Below, in pieces: positions 1,355-42,020 of a stretch of DNA of 64,000 nt. Position 1 is the first letter of the stretch; every line of letters begins with the position of its first letter. The stretch covers positions 976,063 to 1,040,062 of the forward strand of contig NW_003314299.1 in assembly GCF_000143415.4 (NCBI RefSeq), written 5' to 3'. The translations under genes were made by a program, and so were the position numbers. The stretch is from Selaginella moellendorffii (Eukaryota; Plantae; Lycopodiophyta). The notes beneath the pieces were generated by a model. The model worked only from the letters and a program-made list of their open reading frames with translations. It was not told where the DNA came from and did not search any database.

Positions 1355-1427
1355 TTCCGTTGACGGGATTTGAACTAGGGTCGCCTGGATGAAAGCCAGG
1401 CATCTGACCGGAATAGACGACAACGGA
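1355..1427 (-). tRNA. tRNA-Glu(TTC) pseudogene
   Basis: Reverse complement reads TCCGTTG..CCTGG-CTTTCAT-CCAGG..GTTCAAATC..CAACGGA-A. The acceptor stem (7 bp) and anticodon stem are perfect and the anticodon is TTC, but the T-stem is mismatched (CCTAG/CCCGT). Confidence 0.75.
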
Positions 1428-2400: not shown

Positions 2401-2599
2401 ACAAGATCAAACTAAACAATCAAAGACTCTAGTTGCAAAGTCACTAGCATGAATACTCCTGGAAAAAACAATGGACGAAGAACGAACAAGAAGCATTCCA
2501 AAGCTAAAGCAAGAGGGAAGAACAAAAAGCTTGACGGCGCGGTAGTAAGGACCATCTTGCAAGCTTGCGCTCCCACCAGCGAACAAAATGCCATTGATC

Positions 2600-7635: not shown

Positions 7636-9022
7636 TAATGTAGAAACTATACTTGCGTTCTCACCCTTGCTTGCAAAACAGTGACAAACAAATAAAGACA
7701 AGAACATAGAAGAAGAGAAGATAGAAGAGAATAAAATGTAACTCAACCTCAAATTCTAAAGGCATGAGTAAGGATAAACATAAGTCACTCTCTCAACTTT
7801 ACTTTGCATTAACAATCATAGGCGGGAGAAAAAATGGTTAATTCAATGCAAATGTATATAATAGTGCAACACATCTAAGTGCTATTTATATATTATATGA
7901 TTTTATAACTATTTCTAACTACTTCTCAGCTAAGTCAAGTCTTTCTTTTTGAATGTTTAAACTTAGATATAACTCCATTTTACCTAAACTTCCTTCTTCT
8001 ATTCTGCTTAGGAAGATATACAAAATAAAACATTTACCTCTTCATCACTCCCCCACAACAAAGCTACTATCTATTCTCAAATAGTCAGATTCTCCAAATT
8101 CTACTCTAGGTTGCTGAGCTTGGTTTTCATAATGACAATCTCAACACTTTTGTGTAGATTGTCAAGTTCCTTACGCATGATTTGATTCTCCTAGTCGAGC
8201 ATAGTGATGCACTGGTCTTGGCAACTGATGTGCTTTGCATCAGTGGTTGTGGAAGTAGGGATTGTGCTCTTGAACTATTGAATTATGTGGTGCTGATGAT
8301 TTTGCTCACTTATGACTCCATCCATTTTCTTGGTGATTATTTTGAGGTAGCTCAAGACTTACATGTGGTACTTTATAGTTTCCTCATCTTTTACTGGCTG
8401 CATCAGCTCATTAACTGGCTACTTACCTCCCTTGATGTGTTGAGCAAGCTCCTCCATGAAGTTTTGGACTGTTAGCTGGCTAGGCTGACTCGCGGATTTA
8501 TGCGTGAAGGTGTGGCTAACCTTCATCTTATAGTGCTGCTGTGATGTCTGCTTGCAGATGCCTCATCTTGCTAGATTTGTTGGCCAAGGGAGTATTGCTA
8601 TTAGGTGCATAGGTGGACTAGAGAAAACTTAACTCGTACTCCTTCAATTCACTTAAACTCTTTTTTATAACCTCATCCTCTTTGTCTCATTGAGTTTCTT
8701 GGTTGTGATATTTTTGGCCTAAACTCTCCTCATTGGCTGTAAGTATAGCCAATGGTTTTGCAACATATGTAGTTACATCATGTATTGAACCTTGTGGCCT
8801 AAGTTTTAGAATTTCTTTCACATCTTTAACATCCATTGTTCACCTAGTGTTGTCCATTTATGTACTTGTCACTTCTCTGATGCTCAGAGAGATTTTTATA
8901 AGCATTGGATTTGTCTCTATAGACGTAGACAAGTTGCGACTCTGCTCTTGATCTAGGCATAGTGTTTTATCACCATACTTGTTGTGTCTAGCTTTTCTGT
9001 AGCATACTCGACCACTAGATTT

Positions 9023-9870
9023 CTATGAAACAAACCCTGAAGGTCTTATAGCTTGGATTTTTAGATCTAGTTGAAGTTTCTTTTTGAGGGAAGAATTTTC
9101 CTCTTTTGAATTTGTATTGTCAAGATTCTCCTCTATTTCCATATCCCTCGTTATCTCCCTTGGAGGAGATACTGGAGGTGGTGGCTCAATGGCAAGGAGA
9201 GATGCAATATCCACTTGAGTGGTGTAATGCTCATAGATGTGCCACAAAAAAATGAAGACTCCTGTCTTCAATTGCCTTCTTTTGCTTACTTGTAAAGCAA
9301 TATTTTTCATTTCGGCCACAAATCCATTATAGAGGAAATGAGCTATATTTATTTGCCATCCAGTCTCGATAGCTTCCAATAGGCAAGCTATCTTGATGCT
9401 AACATTTTGCACAATCATCCTCCTATCAATGATGGCATATAACACCTTAAGCCTAGCATGAAAGTTAAACTTTAAGTAAGTGAAGCTCCCTCCTCGTCTA
9501 GATGTGTAGTTTGGGAGGACGTATTATTCGGGTATGCGATCTTTCTTGCTTATTGTGATTATTTCACCCTCATTGTCTAAGCAAAAAATCTGAGCAAATT
9601 AGGTGAATCCAAAGAGATGGACTCATCCATGGAAAAGAAAATCATGCTCATTTGAGTACCACTTCTACATAAGCTCAATCCCCTGCTTGATTATTATTTC
9701 TCCTTTGAACAACTCTGTATAGGCAAATAACCCAAAGGCATTAAGCCAAAACTTGTCATAGAGAGAAAGCATAAACTCCCTAGACAACTTTATTTGGCCA
9801 CAATCCAACTTCTCATAATTGGATAAGATTTCCTCCACATACTCTCTTGCCTAGGCATTTTTGCCATCTG
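9023..9870 (-). pseudogene. additional 3' ORF remnant of the Athila-like element (env-like position)
   Basis: The 140-aa ORF (..GWQINIAHFLYNGFVAEMK..) and interrupted upstream coding-like sequence lie between the integrase and the PPT. Confidence 0.45.
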
Positions 9871-12800
9871 TGGAGATTTATAGGTGAAACACTCAGTGTT
9901 AGCTGACCGAGAGATGAAATGTGGTGCCAATGAAAGTGCCCAAGAGAGATTTTATATCAACAGTGCAAAAGTGGAGTTGATGGCTTGTGGTAATGGCATG
10001 AGGACAAATCCACTCCACTAAATTGAAAGTGCACTTAACCTAACTTTTTAGTAAAAATTACTCCTTTTTTCCAATTCCATTGAACTAGGTCTATAGGAAG
10101 ATAGAAACATTTGGAAATAAGATTTTGAGTGATTTTAATATCCTTTCCATCCATTTTGAAAATTAATTTTATAAGATTCTATAATTGAAGAACCAATTTA
10201 CCTTTTTGTGGTTCTACAAAGTTTGATGTCACTTTGTAAAATTTTTTTAAACCCTTATCCTTTATCCAGTTGGCCACTCTATCTATGCATTTATATAGCT
10301 CATCACAATAAATACTTGCGAGGGCTTTATCCACAAGTTTATCCATAGTTTTGTACTCTAAGATATAGACAATATTTATGCTTATATCTTCATGATATTT
10401 CTTTAAACAGTTTAAATTTACTATTGCAATATTGTCTTCGTTTAAGGTGTGCACTTCAACTGTTCTTGGAGTTGATATTTTAAACAAAATGAATGGACCA
10501 TTTTATTTTCTCTTAAATTTATTTCTAAAAGTATGCCTTGATATTAAAAGACTTTATTTCTTGGTTTAAGCTCACAAAAGATTTTCAATTGTCTTTCAGC
10601 CTTTTTGGCTTTTTAAATTGCATGCAAAGTCTAGATTACTCTAAGTTTAAGCTCATCTAAATTTTCTATTTTGGTAAGTCTTTGCTTAAGAACTTTTTTT
10701 TCATCTAAGCCATTTTTAATTGCAATATACAAAGAAGAAATTATAAATTTCATAAGCATTAAAGCTTTTTGGTCATAGGTGAGACAAAATGGTGTCATAC
10801 CTATGGATACTTTATATGCAATTCTATAAGTCTATAAAGTATATAAGATTTTCTCATCCTAGTTTTTTTTATTGTTCTTTACAATTTTTTTCAAGATATT
10901 TTTAAGCACTTTGTTAGTAGATTAAGCCTAACTATTCTCTTGTGGGTAATATGGCATGGACTTTTTATGCTTAAGGATGAATTCTTGTATCATTGTAAGA
11001 TTTAGTTTGCTTAAAGAAATTGTCACAGATATAGACACCCATTTCATCAATGAAAAAATAGAATAAAGGAATTTGATAGTATTAGCAATTAAGGCTTGTT
11101 TCATAGGCATAGCTTTTGCTCATTTAGTCATATAATCAATGACAACTAAAATGTATTTATTCCTTTTATTGCTTATTACTATAGAGCCCACAAAATCTAA
11201 TCTTTATTTATGAAATGCTTTATATGGATAAGTAGGATGTAGTTCGTGGATTTTCTTTTTAAAAAGAAGTTTATACTTTTGGCAAATGTCACAATTTTTG
11301 CAAAAAATTACTGTATCTTTCCAAAGAATAAGCCACAATAACCCTATTTATAAAACTTTTCTTAGCAATGATTTCATCTGCAAAATGGCCTCTTGATAGA
11401 TTAAGTGAACTTCCCTTAAAATTTCATTTCTTTTTTCATATCTATTAACACATTTCTTTAATGTTTTGTCGATGCCTAATTTATATAGGTGCTCCCCATG
11501 ACAAAATAAGGTCATATCCTCAAGACAAACAACTTCTTTTTCTTTGGCAAATTATAGTGAGGTGGAATTATGCCTGTCGAAAGATAAATTTGTATATCTT
11601 TCAACCAAGTGGTAAATAAAAAAATTGTAAATAAGTGAGCATCTAGGAGTTTATCTACCTTAGTATTAAGTGACTCTTCTGTAGTGATGCAGCTTAGGCA
11701 ATTGATTTGTTCATGGAATTTTCCAGATCTATATACTATTTCAAGATTATATTTTTGTAATAGTAAAAATTATTTAATTAGTTGAGCAAATATGCATGGT
11801 TTATTGATAAGATATAAAAGAGCTTTATGGTCAGCAAAGACAATAACTTTTGTTGCTAAAAAATAATGCTTAAATTTTGTAAGGTGTAAACTATATCTAA
11901 GGCTTCTTTTTCAGTCATTGTGTAGTTATGTTTAGTAGGATTTAAACATTTGTTAGCATAGTAGATAGGATAATCTTTTTTATCACCATGTGTTTAGGAT
12001 AATATTGTATCTATGGCTATATCAGAAAAATATCCATCTGTAGGTGAAACGCCTTTGTTCAGTTAAACTTAACAAATATAGATGCCTTTTTGAAGCAATG
12101 TTTAAACCTTAAAAATGCTTCTTAACAATTTTCATTCCATATAAATGGATTATCTTTCTTTAAAAGATTAGTAAGTGGTTTAGCAATTTTGCATAAGCTT
12201 TTATAAATCACTTATAATAGCCAACTTTGCCTAGAAAACAACAAAGATTTTAATCATNNNNNNNNNNNNNNNNNNNNNNNNNNNNNNNNNNNNNNNNNNN
12301 NNNNNNNNNNNNNNNNNNNNNNNNNNNNNNNNNNNNNNNNNNNNNNNNNNNNNNNNNNNNNNNNNNNNNNNNNNNNNNNNNNNNNNNNNNNNNNNNNNNN
12401 NNNNNNNNNNNNNNNNNNNNNNNNNNNNNNNNNNNNNNNNNNNNNNNNNNNNNNNNNNTAAAATAATCCATGAAAACTCTCATAAAATTAGTGAGATATT
12501 CTCTAAAAATGTCTATAACAACTTCTTGAAATGTAAATGTAGTATTGCATAAGCCAAAAGGCATTTTACAATAGGCATAAATTCCCTATAGGTTTATAAA
12601 AATTGTTTTGTATTTATTTTCAGATACTACTTTCACCTGATTATAACTAAAGAATCCATCTAAAAATGAATACATCTCTTGATCTGCTACTAAATCCAGA
12701 ATTTTGTTTGTGAAAGGAATAGGGAATTTTTATTTTTTTTTGCATCATTTAGTTTTTTATAATTCACACAAACTTGTAATTTGCCATTTTTCTTAAGCAC

Positions 12801-13447
12801 AATTATAAGTGGTGAAAGTCATTAAACATTTTGGATTGGATAGATGAATCCTACTTGAAGAAGTTTATCAATTTCTTCTTTGACTTTACTTTGGTAATTA
12901 AGATTCATTTTATAAAGCATTTGCATTTTAAGCATATTTTTTGAAAGTATATCAATATGGTGTGTATAGAGTTCTGGCAGGATACCTTTTAAATCTTTAT
13001 AAAACCAAACAAAAACGTCCTTATAGTCTTTTAGTAAATTTATGGCCTAATTGCAAAATTCACTTTGCAATCTTTGAGCAATTATGATAGTATGAAGATT
13101 ATTCTCATCTGCTAAATTGATTTGCTCAAGTGGTTGATCATAAGAAATATGTGAAATATAGTTTCTTTATTGATCAATTTTATTGGCAGAATCTTTTTTT
13201 AGGGATAAATCTCTTATAGCAATACTAATTTTTGATTTATGAACTTCTTGCCTAGATACTTCTTTGAGTATTGAATAGAGATTAACTTTTGAAATTGGCT
13301 CATTTTCAAAGAAAGCTTTTAAGCTTTGTTATTCTTAGAAATCATGTAAGCCTTCCTTCCAATCATAAGATTGAGTTTTGAAGGGTGATTTTTCCTTTCC
13401 AACTATATAGTGGAAGTAATGAGCATAGATCTTTTCTAGTTGCTTTG

Positions 13448-14225
13448 TGTAGCACACATGAATTTGGAGTTAAACTCCAAGCCCATTGCATTCAGATGGA
13501 GTTTGGCACAATTTTGGCATACTAGTGGCCTAATGCGAGAAAGAGGGTACCCCACCAACAAGAGCAGCATGGAACTTGGGCTTAGACCCAAGCCGGATGC
13601 AGAACAAGGAGCAACATAGCCCAACAAGAGCCAAACTAATGTCTCAAGTGGTTAAACATACATTCCAACCACTANNNNNNNNNNNNNNNNNNNNNNNNNN
13701 NNNNNNNNNNNNNNNNNNNNNNNNNNNNNNNNNNNNNNNNNNNNNNNNNNNNNNNNNNNNNNNNNNNNNNNNNNACGAGCTCTGACAATTGTTCAGGCTA
13801 ATTTTTACATTCCGTAGATATGCTAAATGAACGAATCTAGACACTATTCGTAAATAGCATTTGGGATTGAAATGAGACTTAACACAGTCGGGCGTGATAG
13901 TGAGGGTGTTTGGCAAACATGGTAAACTATCATCCGGCGATATTGAGGGACTAGTCTCAATATGCGAGAGTTCTTGCCAAGCCAATGCAAGACAGAGCAA
14001 AAAAGAACTAACAAGCCGGGCCAAGTATGTTTGGCTAAATAGACACTTAGGAATTCCTTCTTTATGCTCGCCCAAATGCTAAGTCCAATTTACTAACACT
14101 TGGACAAAAGGGGCTAATAAAGGGAACTAGTAGTACCGATCTCTTACTGTTGTGGCAGTAAGGAAAAAGTGCCTGTAAGGACTAGCCAACAAGTATCTTT
14201 TAATACCCGAAGTCACATCGCGACA
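13448..14225 (-). repeat. 3' LTR of the chromovirus (contains an N gap)
   Basis: TG..CA ends, adjacent PPT, and homology to 30180-31058 and 32029-33002. Confidence 0.8.
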
Positions 14226-15360: not shown

Positions 15361-16146
15361 CTACTTCGCATAAGTCTTAATGGCCGGGAACAACACTTTG
15401 GATATTGGTTTCGGTACAACAATCTGTTGAGGCACCCCTCGAGCATTCCCTTGCAGCATCTCCCATAGAGAGCAGCCAATCATGCTGTGAAATGTGTTGT
15501 TATAACAAAATTCTGCTGTGTCTAAATGCTCAACCCAATTGCGTTGGTTCGCCGTGACATAGTACTGCAGATAATCCTCAACTTGAGCATTCACGTGTTC
15601 TGTCTGCCCATCAGTCTGAGGATGATAAGCTGTACTAAACTTCAACTTAGTACCGAACAACTGGAATAGTGTGCCCCAAAACTTCCCCATAAACCTCGAA
15701 TCTCTATTTGAGATCATCTCTTCGAGAAGATCACGAACCCGCACTACTTCATGGAAAAAGAGCTTTGCTGCTTGCTTCACATTCACTATTTCCACAGTTG
15801 GAATCAAGTGTGCAATTTTTGACAACCGATCCACAACCACCATCAAAGTATCATAACTCTTAGACTTCGGCAAGCAAGTGCCAAAATCAAGTGTCACACT
15901 TTGAAATGGCCATGCCGGTGCTAGAATGCATTGCAATTTTCCAGCTTGCTTCTCATTTTTGCACTTACATTGCTGACATATAGGGCAGGAACGGACATAG
16001 TCCGCTACATCACCTTCCATACCAGACCAAAAAAATCCCTTTTTCAATGAAGCTAGGGTATTTCGCTTCCTACCATGTCTTGCTGCTGAAACATCATGAT
16101 GTTCCCACAGAAACAACTGTTGTAGATCCTTAGAGGGAAGATACAA
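15361..16146 (-). pseudogene. gypsy integrase (zinc finger + core)
   Basis: HH..GH..W..CPICQQCK zinc finger; TLDF, VVDRLSK, SNRDSRF and HPQTDGQTE core motifs; frameshifted at the 3' end. Confidence 0.9.
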
Positions 16147-16734
16147 TCTTTCTTACTTATAGAATATAAGCCCATCCCAAACTGAGAAGTGAAGCTTCAT
16201 ATTGGTTCAACTAACTTTCACCACTTCACTACTAACGTTCTACTTTGACAACTCCGCAAAATGTAAGATTGCCTTCACCAATGGATCATTACCATACGAA
16301 GTCCAAACGTCCTCCAACCAGTCCGAACTGATTGCTGATATTGCCCGGAACTGAGACGGACGACTCAATGCATCTAGAACAATATTGTTTTTACTAGATT
16401 TATATATGATTTCAATATCATATCTAGCAAGCTTCTTTTGCTAATGAGCCTACTTCGGCGTAAGCTTAGGCTGAGTAGCAAAGTAGCTTAGTGTGTTATT
16501 ATCTGTATAAACCTTGGTATGTCTACCCAAGTAGTGTCTCCAATGTTCTAGGGCCAACACTATAGCAAACATCTCTTTCTTATGCATTGGCCATCTTTGT
16601 TGAGTTTTATCCAATTTCTTGGAATAGAATGCAATGGGATAACCATGTCGTCTTAGCGTAACACCCACTGCTTTGTCACAATCTTGCTGCAACACGGCAC
16701 TAATAACATAGCCAAATGCATCACAATGCACTTC

Positions 16735-16758
16735 ATGCTCTATTTCGTTAAAGTGGGA
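16735..16758 (+). repeat. left terminal inverted repeat
   Basis: ATGCTCTATTTCGTTAAAGTGGGA. Confidence 0.9.
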
Positions 16759-17394
16759 TTTATTCAGTAAAATGGGACTAGGTACAAATTTTCAAGTATT
16801 TGAAAATGACGTGAAATTATATGTTTTTTGTCCAGGGGCTAGACATATCTGGGGCATGGTGACTAGCGCGGTGACCTTATGTCCAGACTGAGTCCATCTA
16901 ATTGTATAATAAATCTCATTGTCAAGGTGAACAAGCCGAATCTGAAGCTAAAGAAGAGCGATGGCATGCGCGCACACACTATTTGTTTGTTCATTGAGCG
17001 TGTGGTGAGCTTTCCAAGATGAACATCATTCCTATTAGCCAGACATATAACTTAATGGTGAGAACATTTAGATATTATTCAATGTTATCTTTTTCTAACG
17101 AATCTAATTGTGAAGGTGTAGCAAGAGGCATTGCTAGTCTGGAGAAGTCATTTAACTCATTTGACCCTTAGTGTATTTTCATGAAACTAAATAACATTCA
17201 TATTATTAAGGAATTTCTCTAGTACCTTTTTTTTACGACATAGAGGCTTGCATTTCTTTCAAAGGTGATTTAGTAAAAGGCCTGAGGGCACATGCCATTC
17301 TATTTCTCAGACCGGTATTAAGATATACTAGTGCAAAGGGAAAAAGGTATTTGGTGATCAAGTAAATGGCATGAGGGCACACACCATTATAAGC

Positions 17395-17652
17395 CTAAGC
17401 GCTAGTGGACACCTCCTTTTTGGTACTCTCAGCGGTACTATCATCCTTTTCCGGGTCAATTGTTTTGCTTTGGATTGTTGTCTCTAACGTTACTGGGGCG
17501 TTCTCGATAGTTGTTAATGTTGCCGTTTGTTCAGAAAAATGATCACCTGGAGTATAGTACGGGGAGTTTGGAAGACTTATATATTCTACATCTTCACCTA
17601 TCTCCTTCTCCGTCTCCTTTTCTGCCTCACTTACAGATTTTGTGCTTGCCAT
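17395..17652 (-). CDS. small acidic/Thr-rich ORF (85 aa) inside the DNA transposon, function unknown
   Basis: ATG-initiated open frame MASTKSVSEAEKETEKEIGEDVEYISLPNSPYYTP.. lying between palindromes. No recognisable domain. Confidence 0.3.
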   Translation of the reverse strand: MASTKSVSEAEKETEKEIGEDVEYISLPNSPYYTPGDHFSEQTATLTTIENAPVTLETTIQSKTIDPEKDDSTAESTKKEVSTSA

Positions 17653-18363
17653 GAGAATGCTCTTCACCCTAAAATATGGAGTTCGTTGTGTTATAAAAGG
17701 AAACCAACACACACGCTGCAAGGGAATGATGGTACATAAAGCACGTAAGCCCACAATATGGGTTTATGTGCCATTAATATGGGCCACACGCCATATTATT
17801 AGATTTATGCACGTGTGATTGGTAAATGCATATGTCACATCATCTTTGTTTTACCTCACACACTATATCAGGCCTAATGAACCATATCACATGTGCGCAC
17901 ATGCTATATATATGGAGAAGTATTATGCAAGGATAGAAATTCAATGCATGATTGTGGAGAGCAATGGCATGAAGCCACATGCTAAATAACATTTTAGAGA
18001 AAGAATTAAAATAAAAACATGCAAACAGTACTAAGTGGACCAAGACTTAGAAGTGCACAATTGAATAAGGTATTTCTAATAAATACTTCACTCACCTCAT
18101 ATAGGAATGGCTACCACTCTCAAATGGCGTATCGCCTCATGCCATCACCTCGCAATTTGTTATAACAATCCGATGAATTCATATTCGGCTTGTTCACCTT
18201 GAACTTTAAGTAAGATTTGCTAGAACAACTAAGAATTTATACTTGTTATTTGTATCATCTCACCTAGGAATGGCGTAAGGCCACATGCCATCACGCCTCC
18301 TCTGATTCAGATTCGGATTGTTCACCTTGAAATAAAATACATTAGAAACTTAGTAAAGGAATA

Positions 18364-21300
18364 TTAATGAATCTCACCTTGAACCCGGGTTATGAATGCT
18401 CTTGCTGCATCTCTTGCATGGTCTGGCAAGGTGATGGTGGCACTCTGCTTCCGCATCCAACCATGCACAACATTATCCACCGATATGCTCATGCTGGGAT
18501 CCCTTGGATTCAGCACCCATCTCTTTTCTAGGCAATCGTTCGTATATCCGGAACTTGGCTTGAACCACTCCACAGTTACATTGAAGGAGTTAGTTTCCGC
18601 GTCCTCCTCTGCATCAGTGATGCAGCGCCCCACCCATATCATTTGTTTTTTATTACTGGGTCTGACAAGCACGACCATTCCTTTGCAGACCTGTACTGGA
18701 TTGAATGCTGAATCCGGCTTCTTGTTCCTCAGCCCACAATAGTGATCCTCAACATCGTTATCTGTCACTGCATTTCCAGAGGACATTGTTCCGCTACTAT
18801 CTGGTGCTCTGGGTTCTGGCCAAAAGGACTCTTCCAATTCTTCATATACAACCGGCCCATTTTGGATAGCAGATATAATCTTCTCCCAATATTCGAGCAA
18901 AGGCTTGCACCTCTGAAAATAGGATTCTCCACCAAACACCAACCCCCTCTTCCAGAAGGCAATATGCTGTCTAATCCCGGCCACTATACTTTCCTGGTCT
19001 TTGAGTCCATCCGGGTGCATCGGCCGTGGGGAACCCTGAGGAATCATAGGTTCCCCAGTTATGGGATCTCTCTTGAAGAGTTCAATGCCGTCCACTGGCA
19101 GCCACACTGTGTCCCATTCTCTCATCTTGTACCTCATCACTGGAGCACCGTCACACATACTGAAATGAAATTGAAGAGGCTTGGAGTGGCCAATCAGCGT
19201 TTCGGATCCGTCCCTGATGTAGCCTCTTACAAACCCCTTAAAGTTTGGAACCTCTGTCAGAAGTGCAGCTTCAACAGTGCCTTTGATGCAATTTTGGAAT
19301 TCATCGTAGAGTTGTGGGAGGGTGAGGACATTGGATCGCCGGAGGGACTCTGCCAGGTGACTGAACATGGCATCGACGTCTTCATGAGTGTGCCCAACCA
19401 TGAGAAAGCCAAGTGTAACCGTTTCAAATATGCCTTTGGCAACAAGCATCGCCAAGTACGCGAAGACGTACATGTTTTTGTTCTCACTGCCAGCATTGTT
19501 TGTTTGGAGCAGAAGATGGGGTGGAAGGCCACATCGGCCGCAAGAACTTCCTTGAGATTCTGCTTCGTTTGGATGAGGCTGTGCATTCACCGGGCGACCA
19601 GCCTCGTCGGAATGGCATGAGGCCTCACGTGATAACCCTACAATCTGACGGCCAACATATTCACTGGGATGGCATGGGGCCCCACGCGATACTGCAAGCC
19701 TTTGCTCCTCCTCCAGCTGAACCCTGTATGGGGTTCGATCGACAAGGGCCTTATGCAAGGGTTGGCCGTTCAGCTCAGTCTGCGCACTTTGCAGAGACCT
19801 TAAGTGTTTTGCTAGGGACGCAATCATCATGTTTGCACCCCCGCCACCCCATAGAGGTACAAAGAAGTTCCCATAGTTCTGGGCACCATGCCCATGAGCG
19901 ATTATGCCAAACAGAGACACAGGCAGCTGCATGGATGAAGAGATTGCCTTGGGGGCAGGATTGAGTCGAGGTAAGCACGTCTTTTTCTGGTCCATTTTGT
20001 CGTGGATGATGCAGAGGTAAGAGTCAGGTCTTTCCATGGAGAGAATCCTGTTATGATAATATGCAGTCCTGCAGCTTCTCTGCTCGATGTTGTGGTCGAG
20101 CCGCCTTCTAACCAACGTCTCTCGCTCTTGAGCGCTGCAAGAATTCTTCGACAAAGCCATTTTGATAGCAGTGCACTCGTCACACTTTGAAAAGCTGGAG
20201 TACTTTCCTATACTCACATCCCTGAACCTGTTGCTCCACAATCTACTAAATCTAGATTGGCTCAGTTTCCTGTAGCCATTACTCTGGAGTTCCCGATTCA
20301 CATCTTCCAATATGGCCCCCTTGGTATACATGGAAGGGAGAACTCGTTGGGTGTCTCAAGTTCCATCTTCCAAGAGGCGGGTTTTATGTGGTTGTTGCTC
20401 GCTACATGTCTCGACAAACCTCTTGAAGATTGCCTCTCCATATACAACATGACCCCTGGTTTTGTGAGTACTATCGTTCCCATGGACTGCCTGTTGAACC
20501 CTTTGTTCCTCGAACTCAGTTTTGATTCTGTAGAATGTGGTTCGAGGGACTCCATAAATGATTCTCCATGCCTTCATGCAGACCAAACCCCTCTGGAAGA
20601 CCATGCCCCCCACCTGATGTTCTGAAGCATCAACAGATGACTGTAATGCCTCATACACAAAATTGCGAGCTGCCTTCCAGGACAATGTCTTGTATCTTGC
20701 TCTCTCCTCTTCAATAGCATCCCAATCAGCATGTTGACAGCACCTCCTCTTGCAACAAGCAACTGTCGAGACCATTCGAACCTCCATCGCCATTTTCTGC
20801 CTTTTCGGTTCGTTGCTCAGATCCCTTTGGCTGCGCTTTAGGAAGGTGTACTTTCTTTTCCCATGAAGAGATGTTCTGTCATCAGTTGTAGTGGTGTTTG
20901 ATTGTGAATCCTTCACATTCTCAAACACTAAGTGCCTCAATTTCCACCGCACAATGCTTCCAATAGTCAGACTGTTTTCTTCTGTGTCAACAACCTCTAA
21001 AATCGCAACTCCAATATCATCCCAGCCCAATTCTTGATTAGCAACCACATCTCTTGGATCGACAACTGTGGCTAAGCCCTCAGCTACCACCTCGCCCTCG
21101 GGGTTGTTTAGAAACACTTTTGCCTGAATCCATGTAGCACGGTTCTTAAGATCCACGGAGGGAACATGCGTCGCACTTGCGCTGTCCCCAACATCTGCTT
21201 TCTTCTGAAGATTTTTCAAGGCAACAACAACATTTACCCCGACGACCATCTCTCCTCGTTCAATAGCGACCACATTCCCATCGAAGACAGTCTCTACTGA

Positions 21301-21432
21301 TACAGCAGCATTGCCTTCCCCAAGCCTTTGACAGTGTATAACAAAGTTCCGATCCATAGACACAAGGGTCCCTTTTGCAACTCTCTTCCCACCATTCAAA
21401 ATGTAAACCTTTTCCCCAACCCTGAAGGCCAT
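18364..21432 (-). pseudogene. Sola-like DDD transposase, ~1022 codons, one premature stop
   Basis: ORFs 20356-21432 and 18364-20331 are in the same frame and separated by a single TGA (20356-20358; DGT*DTQRVLPSMYTK). Core motifs: CDEC, IIHDKMDQKK, LQT(N)NAGSENKN, FLMVGHTHEDVDAMFS. Two N-terminal TNP1/En-Spm-like beta repeats (VAKGTLVS..LGEGNAAVSV; VVAEG..LGWDDIGVAI) and a C-terminal Tudor/BAH-like beta module. Confidence 0.8.
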
Positions 21433-22297
21433 TCTGAAAGTGCAGAAAAGAAGTTAAGACCATACAAAAAATGATTGGAGAATGGCCTAAATCATAACAT
21501 ACCAAACAACCTCAATAGCATGAGGCCACATGCCATTATTCAAACATGCTATTGACACCCACGTGAAATTTCGCATTCACAAAATTGGCATGAGGCCTCA
21601 TGCCATCTTGATATACACACAGCTGCAGGCAAGTAAAAACATACATGACAATACGCTAGCCATGAAATTGCAAGGGCCCAAGATGGCATGTGGCCTCATG
21701 CCATTTCTAAATGTGGTCCTAAGCCATTCCATGGTGAACATACCAGGAAGCACAAGTGCCGAATATCAAGAGGAAGCGGTAGCCACACCAAAGACAGTGC
21801 CGCTCGCAACACCGCAACTACTCGTAGCGCCGCTCGCAACACCGCAACTGCTCGTAGCGCCGCTCGCACAAACTGCCACTCGCATAAACTGCCGCTCGCA
21901 ATGGCGCTCGCAATGCCGCAACCGCTCGTAGACGCATAAACCACAGCCCACAACGCCGCTTACACAAGCAGCGCTCACTGCGCTCAGCGGAACCAAGAAC
22001 ACGGCGCACAAAAATGATAGACCTAGGAATGAGTTCGAGAATTCAAAAATAACACACGCTTGAACGTCACATCAAATCCTCTGACAAACCAGATCTTATG
22101 ATTCCTCTGGCAAATTTCAAACTGAGTAGCTTCTAGACTTTGCTGTCGGAGGTTGAACTTTGTCACATCATGTCCTTGCCTCGATCCAGCTGTGCCATGT
22201 CAGTGATTCGAACTTTGCCATGCCATGTCAGCGATCCGCGCCAAGATTATTCGCCGTGTAAAGGAATAATTATGCTGTGTGTGTACGTCCATTTATG

Positions 22298-22407
22298 GCA
22301 ATATAAGGCCACACGCCATTCAAAGAATAATGCTCGACATAAGGCCACACGCCATTCAAAGAATAATGCTCGACATAAGGCCACACGCCATTCAAAGAAT
22401 AATGCTA
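22298..22407 (+). repeat. 33-bp tandem repeat x3 (ataaggccacacgccattcaaagaataatgctcgac)
   Basis: Read directly; each unit carries a half-palindrome. Confidence 0.9.
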
Positions 22408-22799
22408 GTCGAGCATTTTTTGGTGCATTTTTGGGTTCAAAATTGCATGAGCCCACATGCTATAAAGTTTACCTGTACCAAAAATAGAAACAGCTTTATT
22501 TACTTGGGAATTTAAGTGGTTGAGGCATTTTTAAACTTACAAACACATGCCCTACTTACATTCCTTTGGTTGCCTAAAATTCAAAAATATTATAAACCTT
22601 TCTTTTTGCATTTTCAATGTTTTCAATTATGGTTTTTGATTTTCGCAGGACCAGCCTAGTAATCTATTTGCATCCCGTCATGTTTATAGCTAGCTTTCGT
22701 TTGTCCCTTTTGCTAGCCTGAGATACATCTGCTCGGCATCTGCCTCTTACAGCATTTGCCCAGAAAGGGCATCTTTCTTCACGCAGCATTTGCCACATG

Positions 22800-22825
22800 T
22801 TTAGGGTTTAGGGTTTAGGGTTTAG
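22800..22825 (+). promoter_or_regulatory. (TTTAGGG)3 telo-box/interstitial telomeric repeat in the divergent promoter region
   Basis: tttagggtttagggtttagggtttag. Confidence 0.6.
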
Positions 22826-24422
22826 CAATTCAGTAGCTTGATAAACATGCAAATACAGAACTTGATGCAAAATCCTTTGATATGTCACAATGCCCCTAGG
22901 ACCATAAACACATTTCAATAGAGAGGGTCCTTTCATTTCATAACTCCTTACGTAGATCTTGGTGAAACCAGAGTTAGTGAAGTTAGTTTCTTGTGATCCT
23001 GCATCTGATTGTGATGTCCCTTTGCAGTGTCGATGGAAAGGTCAATGCACACCAAATTGTAAAATCTTGGAGCAAAATAACGGTCGGATCTATGGCAAAT
23101 GCCCCTGAAACATTGTAAGGCTCGTGTGGTCTCATGTGGTGTCCGATCGAGATACTTCTTTGCAGGGTCATCAAGAAAGACATTGTATACCATTCTGTAA
23201 AATCTAGTTGCGATCTAACGGTTGGATCTCCAGAAAACTCAAAAAAATCTCGCGCGTGTCAGAATATCCTAGGAATATACTCCTATGTGCCCCTGAAAAT
23301 GGCATGCGGCCCCACGCCATTCAAGAGATAATGCCAGATGACGCCGAGAATTTTTTGGTGCATTTCTTGGGTTCAAAATTGCATGAGCCCACACGCTATA
23401 AAGTTTATTTTTGCCAAATAGAGAAAAGTTTATCTGTGTCATGTGAGGTAGTTACAGTCCTTTGTGCTCGGCATCTGCCTCTTGCAGCATTTGCACTGAA
23501 AAGGAATTTTTCTCCATTCAGCATTTGGCCCTGAAAATGGCATGCGCCCACACGCCATTGAAGGAATAACGCCACAGGACGCCTGGATTTTTGGGTTTAA
23601 AATGTTTAGGGTTTTTTGGGTTTTTTCAAAATATTTTGGGTCCAACGTTTTTTGGGTTTCTTTGGTTCAAAATTGCATGAGCCCACACGCTATAATATTG
23701 ATTTGAGAGAAAAATAGAAACAGATAGAATTTCTTTATTTAGCTGAACATCTGCCATTTTTGGAAATACAAGATGCTTTAGAATATCCAATCATGCATGG
23801 TATAAATATAGCGAGGGTATTAAATGATATCCCAATCATGATCTTTCTTTTGGATTTCGCGTGCATGCAATCCGAGGAATGATGACATTGCGGATTTCTT
23901 TTGGATTTTGCGTGCTTGCATGCGCGCGGCAATCCAGAAATTAATGGTGGCGCCCAAGTCCGAGGAATGATGACGTGGCGGGATTACCAACCGTTGTGAC
24001 ATTTCGCGCGTGTGAAGTTAGGTTTTGCATTTTGCTTTGTACTCGCGCTCGCACACTCGCGCTCGCGCTCGCATCACACTCGCGCTCCCGCTCGCATCGC
24101 GCTCCCACTCGCGATCACGCTCACTTCTCTACAGGTTTCTCGTGTGCATCGGCGTCCACTTGCGCTTGCATCACACTCGCGCTCGCATCGCGCTCGTGTG
24201 CATCGGCGTCCACTTCAAGACACACCCAGTTTGTAACTTCGCCGCCAACTCTGCCGCCCACTCCGCCACCCACACGCAGCCCACTTGGCGTCCCGGGAGA
24301 TTTCAGCGCCACTCTCCAACTGTAAGTGGCAGAGTAGCCTTGCTGCTACGATCCGCTGCACACACAGTGCACATTCGCCAGCGAGTCCGGCCTCGATTGT
24401 CACGGCCTCCATTCGGCTTCAA

Positions 24423-27400
24423 ATGGTAAGTCTTTTAGACGAAGTAGAAAATGGCATGAGGCCACATGCCATTCAGTAGCAACATTGGCATGCACCGATT
24501 GGGCTCTCGAGTGCAGTCCGGTTACAGATGGCGTGTAGCCTCACGCCATCTTAGGATGCAGCCTCAAGACATCTGATGCAGTGGTGAATGGCGTGTGGCC
24601 TCACGTTATTTCCAGCTGCTAGCTTTTCATCTGTCAGCTCTAATTGTTGTGCATTTCTGAACAGGCGAGGAATTGCGTTCTTCTTCCAGCCACTGTCAAT
24701 GTGGATGCAGAGAAGGGGGAGGAGCTCACCAGTTGGACTTTCGGGATGGAAGGCGAGGATCTGATGCTGTACAACATAGATGGTGGGAGAAAAGAATGCA
24801 TGGGGATCCTCATCCAAGTGACAGACACTCCATGCAGTTCCATGCAAGAATATGGACTGGCACTTGTGGTAGAGACAGCGTCCGCCTTCAAGATCCACCT
24901 TGCACATCCTAGCGGCTTCCCGGAGGGGGGCAGCGGCTATGAGGAATTCCTAGAGGGAGCTAGGGAGAGGTTGTCCAGGAGGCCCACAATTTCAAAGACG
25001 CTGCGGGTCTATGGAATCCACGGACCTCACCTACGGCGATGTTCAAAAACTATATTCCAACATTGAGCCGTTGAGAGTGCCTCCAATTTGCGAAGCGAAG
25101 GGGAAGGGGGTCGATTTGGAAACTACCCCGAAGCAGAAAAGGGTGGTCAAGCTCAAGCCGACGTCCGACTCTGCTGCTCCAAAACAGAAGCTACTCGGTG
25201 ATGCCATTGCCTCGGGTTCGAACACTACACCCACCAAAAAGAAGAGCCGCAAAGAGCAGAAAGAGCAAGAAGAGGCAGCAAAAATCGTCGCAGATAATAG
25301 TACTTGTTACTATTCCAACAAAGTATATACAATCGACGTGAGCCGTATCGAGATCCAAAGCAAATACAACCACAGGCTAGTATCTGATGAGTGGGTGGAG
25401 AAACTGAAGCAGAAGATGCTGGCAAGTCCAGTAACACCCGACATCGCAGACGTGATCCCCTACTACCGAACAATGAAGGGCGAGACGAGGTTTCCAGACT
25501 TGATCAATAGGAAGGTGTTGGACGATCAGAACATCCGGTTCTATGCCGTCTCTGGGCAGCATTCTAGCTTGGCGATGCAACAGATAGTTGTGGATATTAT
25601 GGTGGGCGAGGAGGTGAAGAAAGTCTTCAAGACAAGAGTTGTCCGCCTGATAAAAGGCAACTCGCCCCTCCGATCTATCATATACATCTCCCACACGCAG
25701 AATGTCAAGCAAGAAACGTGCTACAAATCGGGTTTGCACGAGACATTGGCACGAACACGGAAGCTCTGGGTTCAACTAAAGAAGCCACAAAAACCAGGAC
25801 AAGGACGTGCACTAGCAACTAGCGCCTGGCAGGTAAGCCTCGTTGCATGTGGCATAGCATGTGGCCTCACGCCATTTCCATTGCAGGAATTCTCGAGTCT
25901 TCTCTCGAAAACACTAGGGGTCAATGACACACTCAGCATCCATAACATTCTACTCGCGACAAAAGTTGTTTTTGACAAATGGGTAGATGTGCTAAGGAGG
26001 TACCATGACGGGGAGTTGCTAAACTCAATGGGTGTGGAGGACGGCCGGAAGCCCAATGATTTGAAGCTCAACGCCTTGCGTTTCTCGCGGTCTCTAGACG
26101 ACGACGACCTTCTGACAGTGGCTAATGCTCTTCTACGTGGTGAGGTAGTCTTCAACAAGACCAAAATGACTCCCGGCCATATTGTGACATACGAGGACTT
26201 GTGCACGACTCTGAGAGCTCGTGCGCTATTGAAGGATTGGATCTTCGAGCAAGTGGCCGTGGCGAGGGTGAGCATCGACACCACGCAAGAGATGATGGAA
26301 GAGCTGGACTTGTCAAATGAAGACATCGACGAGTACGTGAAGGGGGCCCCCAAGTTCATCGATCTGCTGCGGGATGCCACGAAAAGTAAAGCTGAGAAGT
26401 TGGATCAGTATCCAAATTTCATTAAGAGGGATGTCGACCGCCGGCTTCAGAAACAGCTCGACCCTGCAGCAGAGGCCTATCGAGAACCTTACCGGGTATA
26501 CGTGAATTCGAATGAGGATTAAAGGTGGAGGAGCATCGTTTGCTCATGCCATTCATTGCAGATCAAGGGCTGAGTGAAAGGAGCCAATCACCACCTTCTG
26601 ACTCAGATTCCTATGGCGGACTCCCCTTCCCCAATCTCAATGGAGAGGTACAATGGATGAGGGATGCTTTTCAAGTCAGGGCCACGTTTTTCTCATCTCG
26701 TCGTCTTCGAAGGGTGCAAGAACGTGCAGAAACCATGTTAAGACAGTCGGGTGAGGATACGGTCCTAGGTCACGCACTAAAACAGGCTATGGATGTCTTG
26801 TATTTTGAGATGGAGACTCGGCCAGATGATTTTTCCAAGATGGTCCTGGAAAAACAAGCAATCCAGCCTGAGCAGCCTATGGAAGAAATGCAAGAGGGGG
26901 ATGAGGAGCCAGAGAAAGATAATGAGCAGGAAGAGCAGAAGGACGAAGAGGAGGACGAAGAAGAGGAGGACGAAGAAGAGGAGGATGAAGAAGAGGAGGA
27001 CGAAGAGGACTTGGATGGTCCTCACAATGGTGACGATCACAATAACGACGATGACGATGATGACGACGATGGCCAGCCTGAGGTGGCCAAAGAGCAGCGG
27101 AGGAAGGTCATACAAGACAAACCATCAGGTAAATAATAGTACATCCATTCCTAACCTTTTACCATTTCTAACATTGTCCATGTAGGTCGCAGAAGAAATG
27201 GTAAGTAGAGATTATTCAGTTGAATTAAGATACAAACTCTAGCCTTTAGTGTCGAGGAAGGATAGTGCCAAGCAAGGGTCGAAACGTATGTCCAATCCTT
27301 CAGAATCAGCAGTGCGCCCAAGTGATATCGGTCCTAGTTCCTCAATAGTAGTTGATGGTAAATACAGTATAGTCGATTCAATGTGCTAATGAGTTTGTTT

Positions 27401-28890
27401 TTAGTAGCACGGGAGGATACCATCTCAATCGAAGGGAGATATTTGGACATGCATATGGATCCGCCAGTGGACTCTACTTGCCTGCAAGAGTCATCAGAGC
27501 TGGTGGAGGCTACTATCCATATCAACGCCAAGCAAGCTGACCACGCTCCACTTGATGCTGCCCATACCACTGAGTCAATCTTGTCCACGTATCCAACTGA
27601 CGGTGACCAGGCGCCATTGGACCCGCATGAGGCCGCCCCAGCCGCCGAGCCGGTCGTATCCTCATTTCTAACGTGTGCCCAATCGTCTGACTACGCGCCG
27701 TTGGAACCTCCCTACACCGCCCCTGCTGCCTGTTCGGTCATGTCCACTTTGCCAACGGAGGCACCAGCTGAAATGGCGTGTGATCACACGCCATCGGAAC
27801 CACCCCATGCCACTGTTGAGCCAGTTGTACCAGAGTCTACAGCTGAAATGGCATGTGCCCACACGCCATCGGATGCGATTGACCCCACATTGCAGAGGAG
27901 AGTATTTCCGCCCTTCACGTTTCCTCGACCAAAACCCTCTCAACGACCATCGGGAGCACCATTCGCTAATATTGTAGATGGTAAAATTGACTTGTACCAT
28001 TTTTTATGCTGACGCATTTCATTTCAGAGTCACGGCGAAAGTACTGTATCGTTTTTGATCTGAACGGTGTCCTTTTCTCCCATGAGCGTGGCTCGTCCTC
28101 GAATGTCACTGCACCCTCCAAAGCCTGCTGTCGCAAGTTGGTCAAAAGAGACAGATTCACATTAATCACACGGGAGAAACTGCGGGATCTAATAATGACC
28201 ATGCGACACTTAAAACAGAGGGCCGGGTTCAATTTGCAATTGGGAGTTTGGACATCTATGATGCGCCACAATGCATTAACGTTGCTACAGATGATGCACG
28301 ATCAGACGCGAGTAATATTACCATTTGACTTTCTCCTAACGCAGGAGGATTGCTTGACTATGGTCCATGTGAGGGGTAGCAAGCCCATCTTCGTCAAGGC
28401 AGAGGCTGTAGTGATGAACCGGACTGCTAGGTCAAGTGAAATCCTCATCATCGATGACTCGCCGATTAAAACTGCAGCGAACACGCACACATATGCAGTG
28501 CACCCCATCTCTTGCAGTATGGAAACTAGGGAGAAGAAACCGTATGTTCTGGGGGACCTTGCAAAACGGCTTGAAGCGATGGTGATAGAGAACCGGCCAG
28601 TCCAGGAGGTGGCTGCAGAAATCAACCAAATGGCAGATGGAACGGTATATCAGAAGCCATTTGATCGGACAGACACCAGTCATCATTTATGGCATGTATA
28701 TTGTCTAGCCAAGCACTATCCGCATCTCCATAATCTGCTCAACCGGATGGGTTCTTCGACCACTGAACATGAGCGTGGACGTATTAGAGAAGAGATGGCA
28801 TTACTATTGGGTTTAAATCCTGATAGTGTGGAGAGTGATGAAATTCCAAGATTATTGTATAGGCGTTGGAGGCAAAAAATAACAGTCTGA
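24423..28890 (+). pseudogene. transposon cargo gene: ParB/Srx-like domain + acidic tract + FCP1/NIF-type HAD phosphatase (~1280 aa spliced; one frameshift and one stop in this copy)
   Basis: The model uses GT-AG introns 24426-24664, 25833-25886, 26496-26561, 26648-26712, 27129-27185, 27201-27249, 27358-27404 and 27981-28027, all phase-compatible. It has a +1 frameshift between 24954 and 25063 and a TGA at 26571-26573. ParB-like motif: YNHRLVSDEWVEKLKQKM..FYAVSGQHSSLA. HAD motifs: VFDLNGVL, VWTSMM..N, IIDDSPIK. Confidence 0.7.
28028..28890 (+). CDS. last exon: FCP1-homology (NIF) HAD phosphatase domain
   Basis: KYCIVFDLNGVLF (motif I, DLNG variant), LGVWTSMMRHNA (motif II), PIFVK, ILIIDDSPIKTAAN (motif IV). 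Confidence 0.8.
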
Positions 28891-29308
28891 GATGGCATGT
28901 ATTTATTTAAAAATGTAACTTATTATGGCATGGGGTTCCATGCCATTGTATTAATATTAAAAGACAATTCTTTGAGAGGATTTGCATTATACTAGAAGTG
29001 TTACAGCATGTTATTGGAAGTCTACGAAGTTGTTTTATTAATAAGGGGAAAGTAAAGATTGAATGGGGACTTGGGCTCCACCTAGACTCGGAGCAACTGA
29101 GCCAATATTAAAAGGATGGAAAGAAATTGGACGACGATGACAAGGAGAAGAGAAAGGTGAAGCAGTGGCAGGGGGAGGAGAAGTGATTGAGTAGACATTT
29201 CCTTGTTTAAAATAAAATGGCATGTGCCTCAATGCAGTTGAATTTTGTTATATTTATATACTATATAAAGGTTTGGAAACCTTATTTTACAAGTGGGATA
29301 ATGACAAT

Positions 29309-29332
29309 TCCCACTTTAACAAAATAGAGCTT
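29309..29332 (-). repeat. right terminal inverted repeat
   Basis: TCCCACTTTAACAAAATAGAGCTT. Confidence 0.9.
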
Positions 29333-30025
29333 ACTTCGAAGGGTTTATCAAAATCTGGGATCCTGAGAATAAGAACTGTAGTCAAGATCTCCTTCAACCG
29401 TACAAAAGCACTCTGACAAGCCGATGTCCAATGAAATGGAATACTACTATTTGTCAACTCAGTCAATGGAAGAGCAATTCTTGCAAAATTGCACACAAAC
29501 TTGCTATAGTATCCCGCCAAACCAAGAAAGGAATGAACATTTGATACAGTGGTCGGGACTTCCCAGGACTTCATTGCTTCCACTTTTTTTGGATCGACCT
29601 CAATTATGCCACCACTGACTATATGTCTGAGAAAGTTTACGTGCAATTGTCCAAAAGCGCATTTACTTTCCTTAACATACAATTGGTGTTCACGCAATTT
29701 CTAAAACACCAACTCCAAGTGTTTCAAATGATCCTCCAATGTTTCACTAAAGACTAGAACATTGTCGATATATAGGACAACAAATGTGTCTAAATAATCT
29801 CCGAATATTCTATCCATCATAGTGTTGAACGTTGCTAGAGCATTGCATAACCCAAACGGCATAACAAGGAACTCATAAGATCTGTACAGAGTCTTAAAGG
29901 TTATCTTCTCCACATCCTAATTCACCACCCGTATCTGATGATACCCAAACCGCAAATCAAGTCGCATAAAATACTTAGCCTTTAAGAGTTGGTCAAACAA
30001 GTCATCAATGTGAGGTAAAGGATAA
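29333..30025 (-). pseudogene. gypsy reverse transcriptase / RNase H start
   Basis: DLRFGYHQIRV, MPFGLCNALATF, YIDNVLVFS, FLGLAGYY, LRIPDFDKPFEV; several stops. Confidence 0.9.
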
Positions 30026-41039: not shown

Positions 41040-42020
41040 TCGTGGGCTGAGATCATCGCATTCCACGCCACAAGATCCTTGTCCGGCATCTCATTGAAGA
41101 CGAGGCATGCATGATCAATCTGCCCGCTCTGTGCCTGTGCCGTGATCATTGACATCCACAAGATCACGTCCCTGGCCGCCATTACCCAGAAGAAGCACTC
41201 TGCACGGTCGAATCGCCTGTTGCGCACACACGCTGCCATGATCGCATTCCAGTCACGTCCCTCTGCGCCATTGCCACGAAGATCGCCGTCGCCACGCCCA
41301 GATCGCTGGCCTTGCTGTACATGTCCAGGAGCACGGTGGCCAGCACAGGATTGTCTAGCGATGATCCCTCAAGAGCGCTGTGATGGATCAGCTTACCAGT
41401 AGCAAGATCGCCGCTGATAGCGTAGGCACTAAGGATCCCCACGAATGTGATCCCGTCCGGCCTCGCACCCTTGAGATCCATGCGCTTGAAGAGATCGATG
41501 TAATTACGCATTTGCCCGTGCCGGGCATTTGCTGCAATCAAAGCGTTCCAAGACGCCACATCATTCTCAGGAGAATAGAGGAACTGATCTTCCTCTAAAA
41601 GAATTATATCCTTCTTTTCGCATGCGATGATCAAAATAGTGTATGACACGACGCTTTCTTGAGGGATCCTCGCAAGAACAGATCTACCATACAGCAAATC
41701 CCCGCCTTGGGCAGTTGCTGTGAGGAGGATGTCGCGGAGGCCGTGCGTCCGGTTTCCCCGTAAGCCTGGAGCATCGCATTCCAGGATACGATCGTCCAGT
41801 AGGGGATCTTCGCGAAGCACTGCTCCACGATCGCACTGGCGCCCCAGCGCATAGGACGTGATGAGCGCGTTCCAGGCCACAGCGTTGCGCTGCTCCATCT
41901 CATCGAAGAGCACCCTCGAATCGCCGAGGCTCTGAGCCTGCGCACACGCCGCCAGGAGGATCGTCCATGAGAAGATGTTCGTGGAGGGCATCCAGGCGAA
42001 GATCTCCTCGGCAGTGGCGA
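41040..42020 (-). pseudogene. PLS-class PPR gene fragment
   Basis: NIFSWTILLAACAQ, DVASWNALIAANARHGQ..PDGITFVGILSA, LATVLLDMYSK; frameshifts. Confidence 0.85.

Follow-up and report, generated by a model that had tools for sequence, protein, structure and literature searches.

A decayed Sola1-like two-gene transposon of Selaginella moellendorffii with a ParB_N-fold partner gene and a lineage-specific palindrome array

In a 64,000-nucleotide stretch of Selaginella moellendorffii DNA (NCBI RefSeq assembly GCF_000143415.4, contig NW_003314299.1, positions 976,063 to 1,040,062 of the forward strand; hereafter the window), positions 16735-29332 hold a dead and decayed copy of a 12.6-kb two-gene cut-and-paste transposon of a land plant, bounded by terminal inverted repeats (TIRs). 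We delimited the anatomy of this element and found that its module of two genes, a transposase and a divergent partner gene, is conserved in relatives, that the partner protein joins a ParB_N fold to a NIF domain, and that a palindrome repeated over the element is specific to its lineage and conserved within lineages. The explanation that we favour overall, and hold to be probable though far from certain, is a Sola1-type family with a conserved partner gene and a private palindrome recognition code. We therefore describe the element as a Sola1-type transposon with a previously undescribed accessory module, and treat as hypotheses the ParB/parS and anti-silencing readings proposed in an earlier note on this DNA.

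Twenty-three palindrome sites match ATGGCRTGNGNCCNCAYGCCAT with no more than three mismatches (0.01 expected in 64 kb), all within 16961-28946, and at this threshold none was found in the other 51 kb of the window, which holds other transposons and genes. There are in addition a degenerate site at 29216-29237 and three tandem half-sites in 36-bp units at 22297-22410. The sites are distributed over the left subterminal region (6), the sequence upstream of the transposase start (3), the sequence upstream of the second gene (3), the rest of the divergent intergenic region (5), the right end (1-2) and the inside of open reading frames (ORFs; 5). None of the five coding palindromes contains a stop, and each is located in a linker that is disordered or variable, two of them in a duplicated 75-bp unit of the P/A/T/E-rich exon (27773 and 27848). 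The R and Y positions of the pattern look like decayed CpG (to TpG or CpA), and the ancestral site was probably AATGGCGTGNGGCCNCACGCCATT; such decay suggests that the sites were CpG-methylated in the silent copy and that the functional site had two CpGs. Among 241 million metagenome records, the exact pattern was matched three times, as isolated occurrences on unrelated high-GC contigs. At the left end, a 25-nt motif (TCAAGGTGAACAAGCCGAATCTGAA and its complement) stands beside three palindromes (16922-16983, 18178-18202, 18269-18331), and motif and palindrome together make up a larger unit, of about 62 nt, that occurs in both inverted and direct orientations.

Both the partner gene and a palindrome array recur in relatives. 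Two elements of the liverwort Riccia sorocarpa, L002 and L008, whose transposases are 30-35% identical to the present one, were compared, and in each of them a gene in divergent orientation encodes the ParB-like domain (profile E values 2e-38 and 2e-43) as well as the helical domain (1e-22 and 2e-18); in L002 a NIF domain also lies at the 3' end of the partner gene (E 4.7e-13). In a third genome (GCA_022343405.2, JAKNSL020009680.1; L004), the ParB-like, helical and NIF domains stand in a row at 8843-13896; no transposase lies nearer than 10 kb and a palindrome array is likewise missing, and this gene may be either a decayed element or a partner-gene copy retained by the host. Each lineage possesses a palindrome of its own: AATGGCRTGNGGCCNCAYGCCATT here, GCTTCGGGACGCGTCCCGAAGC in Riccia, where arrays with 27-61-bp periods are frequent, and ACCCTATGGCTATGTGGCCATAGGGT on contig L003, where about 20 copies lie upstream of a transposase 36% identical to the present one. 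Within Riccia the site is constant. The transposases of L002 and L008 are 58% identical and their coding DNA 66-76%, their non-coding DNA is unalignable except for short matches at the palindromes, and the same 22-mer is present at 29 sites in L002 and 27 in L008. The retention of one palindrome despite unalignable non-coding DNA is the signature of a constrained cis element. Moreover, a palindrome or an array is located at the junction of the ParB-like and helical domains in all three elements (the present one, L002 and L008). At the DUF7869 loci of Mytilus and Tribonema, both the partner gene and a palindrome array are missing. Where the Riccia elements end could not be defined.

Among these relatives we also observed that the L003 palindrome (positions 1-4700 of that contig) lies inside a 153-bp tandem repeat of 8 units upstream of the transposase, adjoining long (GA)n and (GT)n tracts. 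An apparent coincidence of a Riccia transposase intron array with the two transposase sites of the present element was rejected, the former lying near residue 142 and the latter at residues 214-240.

These results bear on several claims of the earlier note. Its count of at least 25 palindromes is fair if the degenerate site and half-sites are included, the strict number being 23, and the confinement of the palindrome to the element was borne out, none occurring elsewhere in the 64 kb. Related lineages, across which it had proposed to look for covariation of the palindrome with the cargo protein, do have different palindromes (Riccia and L003), and the partner gene is no one-off capture of a ParB/HAD gene, recurring as it does in L002, L008 and L004.

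The limits of the element are exact. A 22-nt core of the TIR occurs at two places in the window, the two element ends, with 0.00 expected. The bases beyond ACTTC differ on the two sides, so that the direct repeat, a target-site duplication (TSD), is exactly 5 bp. Excision in silico of the element with one ACTTC gives ...IPDFDKPFEVHCDAFGYVISAVLQQ... (also written ...PDFDKPFEVHCDAFGYVISAVLQQ...) on the minus strand, and of the Pfam profile RT_RNaseH_2 the upstream piece matches positions 1-31, the downstream piece positions 33-96; the flanking pieces are thus consecutive parts of one domain, which makes the insertion point exact. The 24-bp TIRs, the 5-bp ACTTC and the restored host frame reported in the earlier note were thereby confirmed (ends identical at 22/24 positions, RT_RNaseH_2 rejoined), as were its two divergent genes, with the transposase on the minus and the partner on the plus strand. 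Its distinct 5-bp-TSD lineage is another matter: the repeat is exactly 5 bp here, but a claim about a lineage drawn from one copy was overstated. At the right end (29280-29332) there is a second, inward-facing end motif (AAGTGGGA ... TCCCACTT), and with this inverted copy the tip can form a short hairpin; at the left end a second AAAATGGGA stands in direct orientation, unlike at the right end.

Sola1 DNA transposons were reportedly described by Bao, Jurka & Kapitonov in 2009. We compared by eye our transposase alignment with the RNase H-like cores of Sola1-1_AP, Sola2-1_HM and Sola3-1_HM. As given in the supplement of Majorek et al. 2014, the core of Sola1-1_AP reads FDLEK..TP, YSDNCGGQNRN, GHTQS, that of Sola2-1_HM reads DFAENYT, DGCAGQYKN, SHG, and Sola3 differs again. 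The catalytic pattern D ... DNxxGQN(R/K)N ... GH(T/S) ... D is present in our family, with the second D replaced by N in the present copy and in a second copy, L001. An insect Sola1 miniature inverted-repeat element is listed in PMC3845634 with the TIR GGACCGTTTATTTTGAAAGTGG; in an ungapped alignment with this single published TIR, our element end is identical at 13/24 positions, and both have AAAGTGG at positions 16-22. The shared register, though it comes from one published TIR, may lend independent support to both the Sola1 relation and the exact tip. Judged on motifs and ends, Sola1 appears to be the group that fits the transposase family best, and the two-gene TIR transposon with Sola-type motifs of the earlier note is supported and becomes more precisely Sola1-like, with DUF7869 and the catalytic motifs together. 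Sola1 has been noted in a land plant before, in the moss Physcomitrella (PMC9033089).

The transposase has numerous relatives. Proteins at 37-42% identity were found, and besides them many proteins of Riccia sorocarpa; more distant DUF7869 relatives occur in cnidarians, molluscs, sponges, amphioxus and a stramenopile alga. Three motifs are invariant in the alignment: HDKMDQ.KT..P (D..MDQ.KT..P), LQ.DN...ENKN (LQ.DNCG.ENKN) and GHTHED.D. An additional N-terminal region, which includes an HTH-like (helix-turn-helix) stretch, is present in the plant transposases; it contains Pfam DUF8039 in relatives, and only in those from plants. In the present copy, the TGA stop and the change of the second catalytic Asp to Asn make the transposase inactive. 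Near its termini (about 21432-21000 and 18700-18400) we also observed short beta-rich segments that are kept among relatives, e.g. FVLVRP...YPIWLGVA...IQYWAP, and seem to resemble small barrels of the chromatin-reader type.

The partner gene has several predicted exons. Three predicted canonical GT-AG introns (27129-27185, 27201-27404 and 27981-28027) join four exons into a 688-codon frame with NIF at its end. Relative to most other copies, small losses are present at 24123, 25010 and 27669, and a segment between the helical domain and the acidic tract, present in protein P0071 and in Riccia, is missing here, with no similarity to P0071. Conventional searches revealed little about the protein: when the ParB-like ORF and the NIF ORF served as queries in word-indexed protein searches, at most one weak match was obtained, the large-exon (ParB-like) ORF had no match in Pfam or NCBIfam and none in a PDB sequence profile search, and Pfam ParB_N (PF02195) did not match this ORF or its 14 aligned homologues at E values up to 1. 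An exhaustive HMMER search with the ParB-like ORF gave 20 weak relatives, two of them spurious low-complexity matches (P0055, P0062), so that about 18 are credible among 1.8 billion cluster representatives.

An AlphaFold (AF2) model of the ParB-like domain on the homologue alignment had a predicted local distance difference test score (pLDDT) of 74.7, and the top matches to it in a Foldseek search of the PDB (about 48) were all ParB, Noc, PadC, sulfiredoxin (Srx), SbnI or KorB. VIA-align superposed model residues 45-178 on residues 37-132 of Myxococcus xanthus ParB (Z 11.7, root-mean-square deviation 1.9 A over 95 residues), the matched ParB structures being bound to cytidine triphosphate (CTP), and Atlas clusters carrying ParB_N gave template-modelling (TM) scores of 0.52-0.55. 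A ParB_N fold of this domain, as modelled, is well supported. In place of the GxxRxxA box, whose arginines are missing, 14/14 aligned homologues have (S/D)GQH(S/T)xxA. At the other end of the protein, Pfam NIF scored 27.3 bits against a gathering cut-off of 21.8 (E 3.3e-6), with E 5.8e-17 for P0071. The coordinates of all these features are collected in Table 1.

Table 1. Features of the element and of its insertion site (positions in the window; +, - strand; a point, no strand)
Feature	Position	Strand	Remark
Interrupted Ty3/gypsy RNase H domain	16450-16734 (downstream half), 29338-29697 (upstream half)	-	Pfam RT_RNaseH_2
Left TSD copy, ACTTC	16730-16734	.	Same 5 bases after right end
Left TIR, 24 bp, ATGCTCTATTTCGTTAAAGTGGGA	16735-16758	+	AAAGTGG at its positions 16-22; 22/24 match to right end; same terminus in copy L001
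Left subterminal region	16961-18291	.	6 palindrome sites, some embedded in the unit of about 62 nt
Transposase gene, 1023 codons, intronless	21432-18364	-	Pfam DUF7869 (E 7.6e-41)
HTH-like stretch in transposase, AWRIIYGVPRTTFYRI	20524-20571	-
Premature TGA in transposase	20356-20358	-	Sole stop in frame; Arg here in 97%-identical copy P0001
Transposase motif HDKMDQ	19987-20004	-
Two in-frame palindromes in transposase	19612-19690	.	Variable linker between first and second catalytic motifs
Transposase motif QTNNAGSENKN	19474-19506	-
Asn for second catalytic Asp	19498-19500	-	D in 11/11 aligned relatives; N also in L001
Transposase motif GHTHEDVD	19372-19395	-
Divergent intergenic region	21433-24953	.	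11 palindrome sites; triplets 21515/21585/21683 and 24451/24528/24588 upstream of each gene
Second (partner) gene overall	about 24954-28890	+	Divergent from transposase gene
First large exon	24954-26519	+	Basic N-terminus, ParB_N-fold domain, helical middle domain; ATG 25011
ParB/Srx N-terminal-domain fold	25320-25721	+	Motif F.A(I/V)SGQHS..A; model and structure search
In-frame palindrome at ParB-like/middle domain junction	25854-25875	.	Within 16-residue insert absent in homologues
Gene break	26520-26545	+	Stop and frame change; compared with most other copies, a deletion breakpoint near 26541
Exon with acidic E/D-rich tract	26516-27128	+
Putative 15-nt micro-exon	27186-27200	+	Between GT-AG introns 27129-27185 and 27201-27404; from splice sites and restored frame
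P/A/T/E-rich linker exon	27405-27980	+	In-frame palindromes 27773 and 27848
Last exon, NIF (FCP1/SCP1-type) phosphatase-like domain	28028-28890	+	DLNGV 28057-28071; IIDDSP motif
Right-most good palindrome	28925-28946	.
Subterminal copy of end motif, TTATTTTACAAGTGGGA	29280-29298	+	Faces right TIR
Right TIR, reverse complement = AAGCTCTATTTTGTTAAAGTGGGA	29309-29332	-	22/24 match to left end
Right TSD copy, ACTTC	29333-29337	.	Same 5 bases before left end

A second copy of the element is contained in the Logan contig L001, which is 97-98% identical with two internal deletions; its terminus has the same ...AGAGCTT, followed by unrelated DNA, with an AAAGA flank at one end, the only flank given. 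Further, 24,391 contigs from one DNA run of the same organism map to a 5-kb part of the element, so that the transposon family is very abundant. A TIR-pattern search of metagenome contigs, made to compare duplication lengths, found no further copies.

In the surroundings of the element, the Ty3/gypsy polyprotein that it interrupts has an integrase zinc-binding domain downstream (15361-16146, minus strand) and several stops of its own. Another Ty3/gypsy pol fragment (RNase H, integrase H2C2, rve) is located at 47388-48962 on the minus strand, in a region that is strongly GC- and AT-skewed. The window also holds plant genes, among them one for a pentatricopeptide-repeat (PPR) protein (41182-41991, minus) and one for a BAHD-type acyltransferase (58219-59157, plus; Pfam Transferase, E 4e-46).

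How might the module work? In the explanation that we favour, the transposase would recognise the conserved 24-bp ends, and the palindromes would be bound by a dimer of a protein that the element encodes. We consider the partner protein a somewhat likelier palindrome binder than the transposase, in part because the array and the partner gene co-occur, and the evidence is not decisive. Such a private code could regulate the two promoters of the element as well as the state of its chromatin or its silencing, and could contribute to assembling a 13-kb element for transposition; it would then resemble the TnpA sites of En/Spm or the VANC motifs of VANDAL, and not bacterial ParB/parS partitioning.

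Several findings weigh against this explanation. As to the Sola1 assignment, which is one of motifs and ends only, a 4-bp AWWT TSD is given as a Sola1 hallmark in PMC3845634, whereas the present copy, the one with both flanks, has an exact 5-bp ACTTC. As to the partner as binder, neither the HTH with which ParB reads parS nor the ParB dimerisation domain was found, as no structural alignment to ParB extends beyond model residue 178; for residues 180-230, and for the helical domain modelled on its own (pLDDT 77), neither the PDB nor the Atlas gave a convincing match, and the structure searches identified no DNA-binding domain in the partner protein. Only the N-terminal nucleotide-binding part of ParB is matched, and thus the fold alone gives no reason to expect palindrome binding. 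The plant-type N-terminal region of the transposase is as consistent a companion of the palindromes as the partner gene, and is an equally available candidate binder. The NIF domain has a motif I in which the first Asp is kept and the second Asp of DxDx(T/V) is lacking in all three lineages (DLNGV here, DLNGL in P0071, DIEGL in Riccia), and classical phosphatase activity is doubtful since motif I is not DxDxT. Among the sequencing runs searched, no run recorded as RNA holds the second gene, and the contigs of three possible RNA runs align continuously with the DNA, no splice joint being seen. Finally, the Mytilus and Tribonema loci used for contrast may not be intact transposons. In the cargo gene of the earlier note, the ParB/Srx N-domain fold is present but the parS-reading HTH was not found and the GxxRxxA arginines are absent, and a domain of the CTD-phosphatase (polymerase C-terminal domain phosphatase) type scores above its cut-off but with a motif, DLNGV, that leaves its activity doubtful.

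The strongest competing explanation makes the palindromes the transposase's own binding sites, contacted through its plant-specific N-terminal region and serving as internal and subterminal synapsis enhancers or autoregulatory operators, while the partner would be otherwise employed, for example on RNA polymerase through its phosphatase-like domain or on nucleotides. TIR transposons with repeated transposase-binding motifs are common, as Ac, Mutator and P illustrate, and this explanation would make use of the HTH-like stretch at 20524-20571 and of the extra DUF8039 region confined to plant relatives, and would suit a partner protein with no identified DNA-binding domain. We nevertheless regard it as possible but rather unlikely, for the ends have been kept alike in insects and this plant, whereas the palindromes differ from one plant lineage to the next and have no sequence in common with the ends, which argues that they are not sites of end recognition by the transposase. 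Moreover, the sites are spread through the whole element, exons included, and are not concentrated at the ends, and their clusters before both genes suggest regulation or marking rather than end recognition.

A true analogue of ParB/parS, as the earlier note had it, would load as a nucleotide-gated clamp at the palindromes and would spread or bridge so as to compact or segregate the element. The ParB_N fold (Z 11.7 to CTP-bound ParB) and the palindromic sites, of about parS size and many per element, agree with it. However, the GxxRxxA arginines are replaced (SGQHSxxA type in 14/14 homologues), nothing aligns to ParB past the N-terminal domain, and Pfam ParB_N gives no match. Domains of the ParB/Srx type are also found in kinases, sulfiredoxin, GmrSD and methylase fusions, and a fold met in such varied proteins does not imply parS-type behaviour. 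With both the arginines and a DNA-binding domain missing, the ParB clamp mechanism is unlikely, and we hold this analogue to be quite improbable here.

Least probable of all is that the palindromes have no protein partner and multiplied within the element as self-propagating or slippage-prone repeats, for although some sites lie in frame in coding linkers (Rickettsia palindromic elements, too, insert in frame into genes) and there are arrays of 27-61-bp period in Riccia and 36- and 75-bp duplications here, the sites are confined to the element within 64 kb that hold other transposons and genes, the same 22-mer persists in L002 and L008 of Riccia although the rest of their non-coding DNA can no longer be aligned, and triplets stand before both genes.

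If the explanation by a private palindrome code is true, it would bear on how very large DNA transposons attain high copy number in non-seed plants. Three points are unusual: the partner protein unites a bacterial-type ParB N-domain with a domain like that of polymerase-CTD phosphatases, the palindrome code is constant within a lineage and different between lineages, and sites are tolerated in frame in the element's own proteins. In practice, DUF7869 can be tied to Sola1-type transposases, and the palindromes provide a simple diagnostic for annotating the family. Within a coverage that excluded the original Sola1 description, our literature search turned up no mention of DUF7869 and no link between a ParB-like protein and a plant transposon; Repbase entries may already show two ORFs.

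Compared with known systems, the element is closest to Sola1 in its catalytic motifs, in AAAGTGG at TIR positions 16-22, in cut-and-paste transposition and in short TIRs. In the descriptions consulted (PMC3845634, PMC10294476), Sola1 elements are given with a transposase only and a length of about 2-5.5 kb. Unlike Sola1 as described in such citing papers, the present family is 12.6-13.7 kb long and has a conserved second gene, a palindrome array and, here, a 5-bp ACTTC. The likeness to bacterial ParB, Noc and KorB lies in the N-terminal fold (Z 9.8-11.7 to ParB, Noc and KorB chains) and in palindromic cis sites, whereas the CTP-box arginines are absent, no HTH or dimerisation domain was found in the structural comparisons, and the fusion is of NIF type and the context eukaryotic.

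Starships, the giant transposons of fungi, have an accessory gene of unexplained role, DUF3723 (Gluck-Thaler et al., bioRxiv 10.1101/2021.12.13.472469). They and the present element are both large eukaryotic transposons with a conserved accessory gene, but Starships use a tyrosine recombinase. A protein-language-model search placed DUF3723 clusters at 0.96 feature similarity to the ParB-like domain, which is a lead only: this link was not confirmed, as Pfam PF12520 matched neither the ORF nor the 14 homologues and DUF3723 is absent from the structure-based Atlas list. Tentatively, and with more doubt than belief, we suggest that in a widespread lineage of plant Sola1 transposons, and perhaps in other giant transposons such as Starships with DUF3723, a ParB_N-fold protein might read a private, fast-evolving palindrome code, even in the exons of its own element, and bring along a CTD-phosphatase-like module, thereby reprogramming the transcription or silencing of no family but its own; transposon self-recognition of this kind would form a new class.

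To our knowledge, few systems are known for sequence-specific self-recognition of a transposon, namely the VANC motifs of VANDAL and the TnpA sites of En/Spm. In En/Spm (CACTA), a second element protein, TnpA, binds 12-bp subterminal motifs and acts in transposition and in the control of promoter and methylation. By analogy, our element is likewise a two-gene DNA transposon with motifs repeated within it. It differs in that TnpA sites are subterminal only and that the CACTA proteins come from one alternatively spliced transcript and not from two divergent genes, and the two systems have no known homology. In the sequence-specific anti-silencing system of the Arabidopsis VANDAL elements, an element-encoded accessory protein, VANC, goes together with short dispersed motifs, often tandem, that differ between related families (Hosaka et al. 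2017, PMC5735166; PMC10398659). The present element may be called a functional analogue on the cis side only, with lineage-specific motif arrays over the element itself. VANDAL elements are Mutator-like, and VANC motifs are short, non-palindromic and non-coding, whereas the palindromes described here are 22-24 bp long and occur also in exons; VANC and the present partner protein are likened by this pattern, not by sequence or fold. If the private code proves true, the Sola1-type family would thus be a third, unrelated case of sequence-specific transposon self-recognition.

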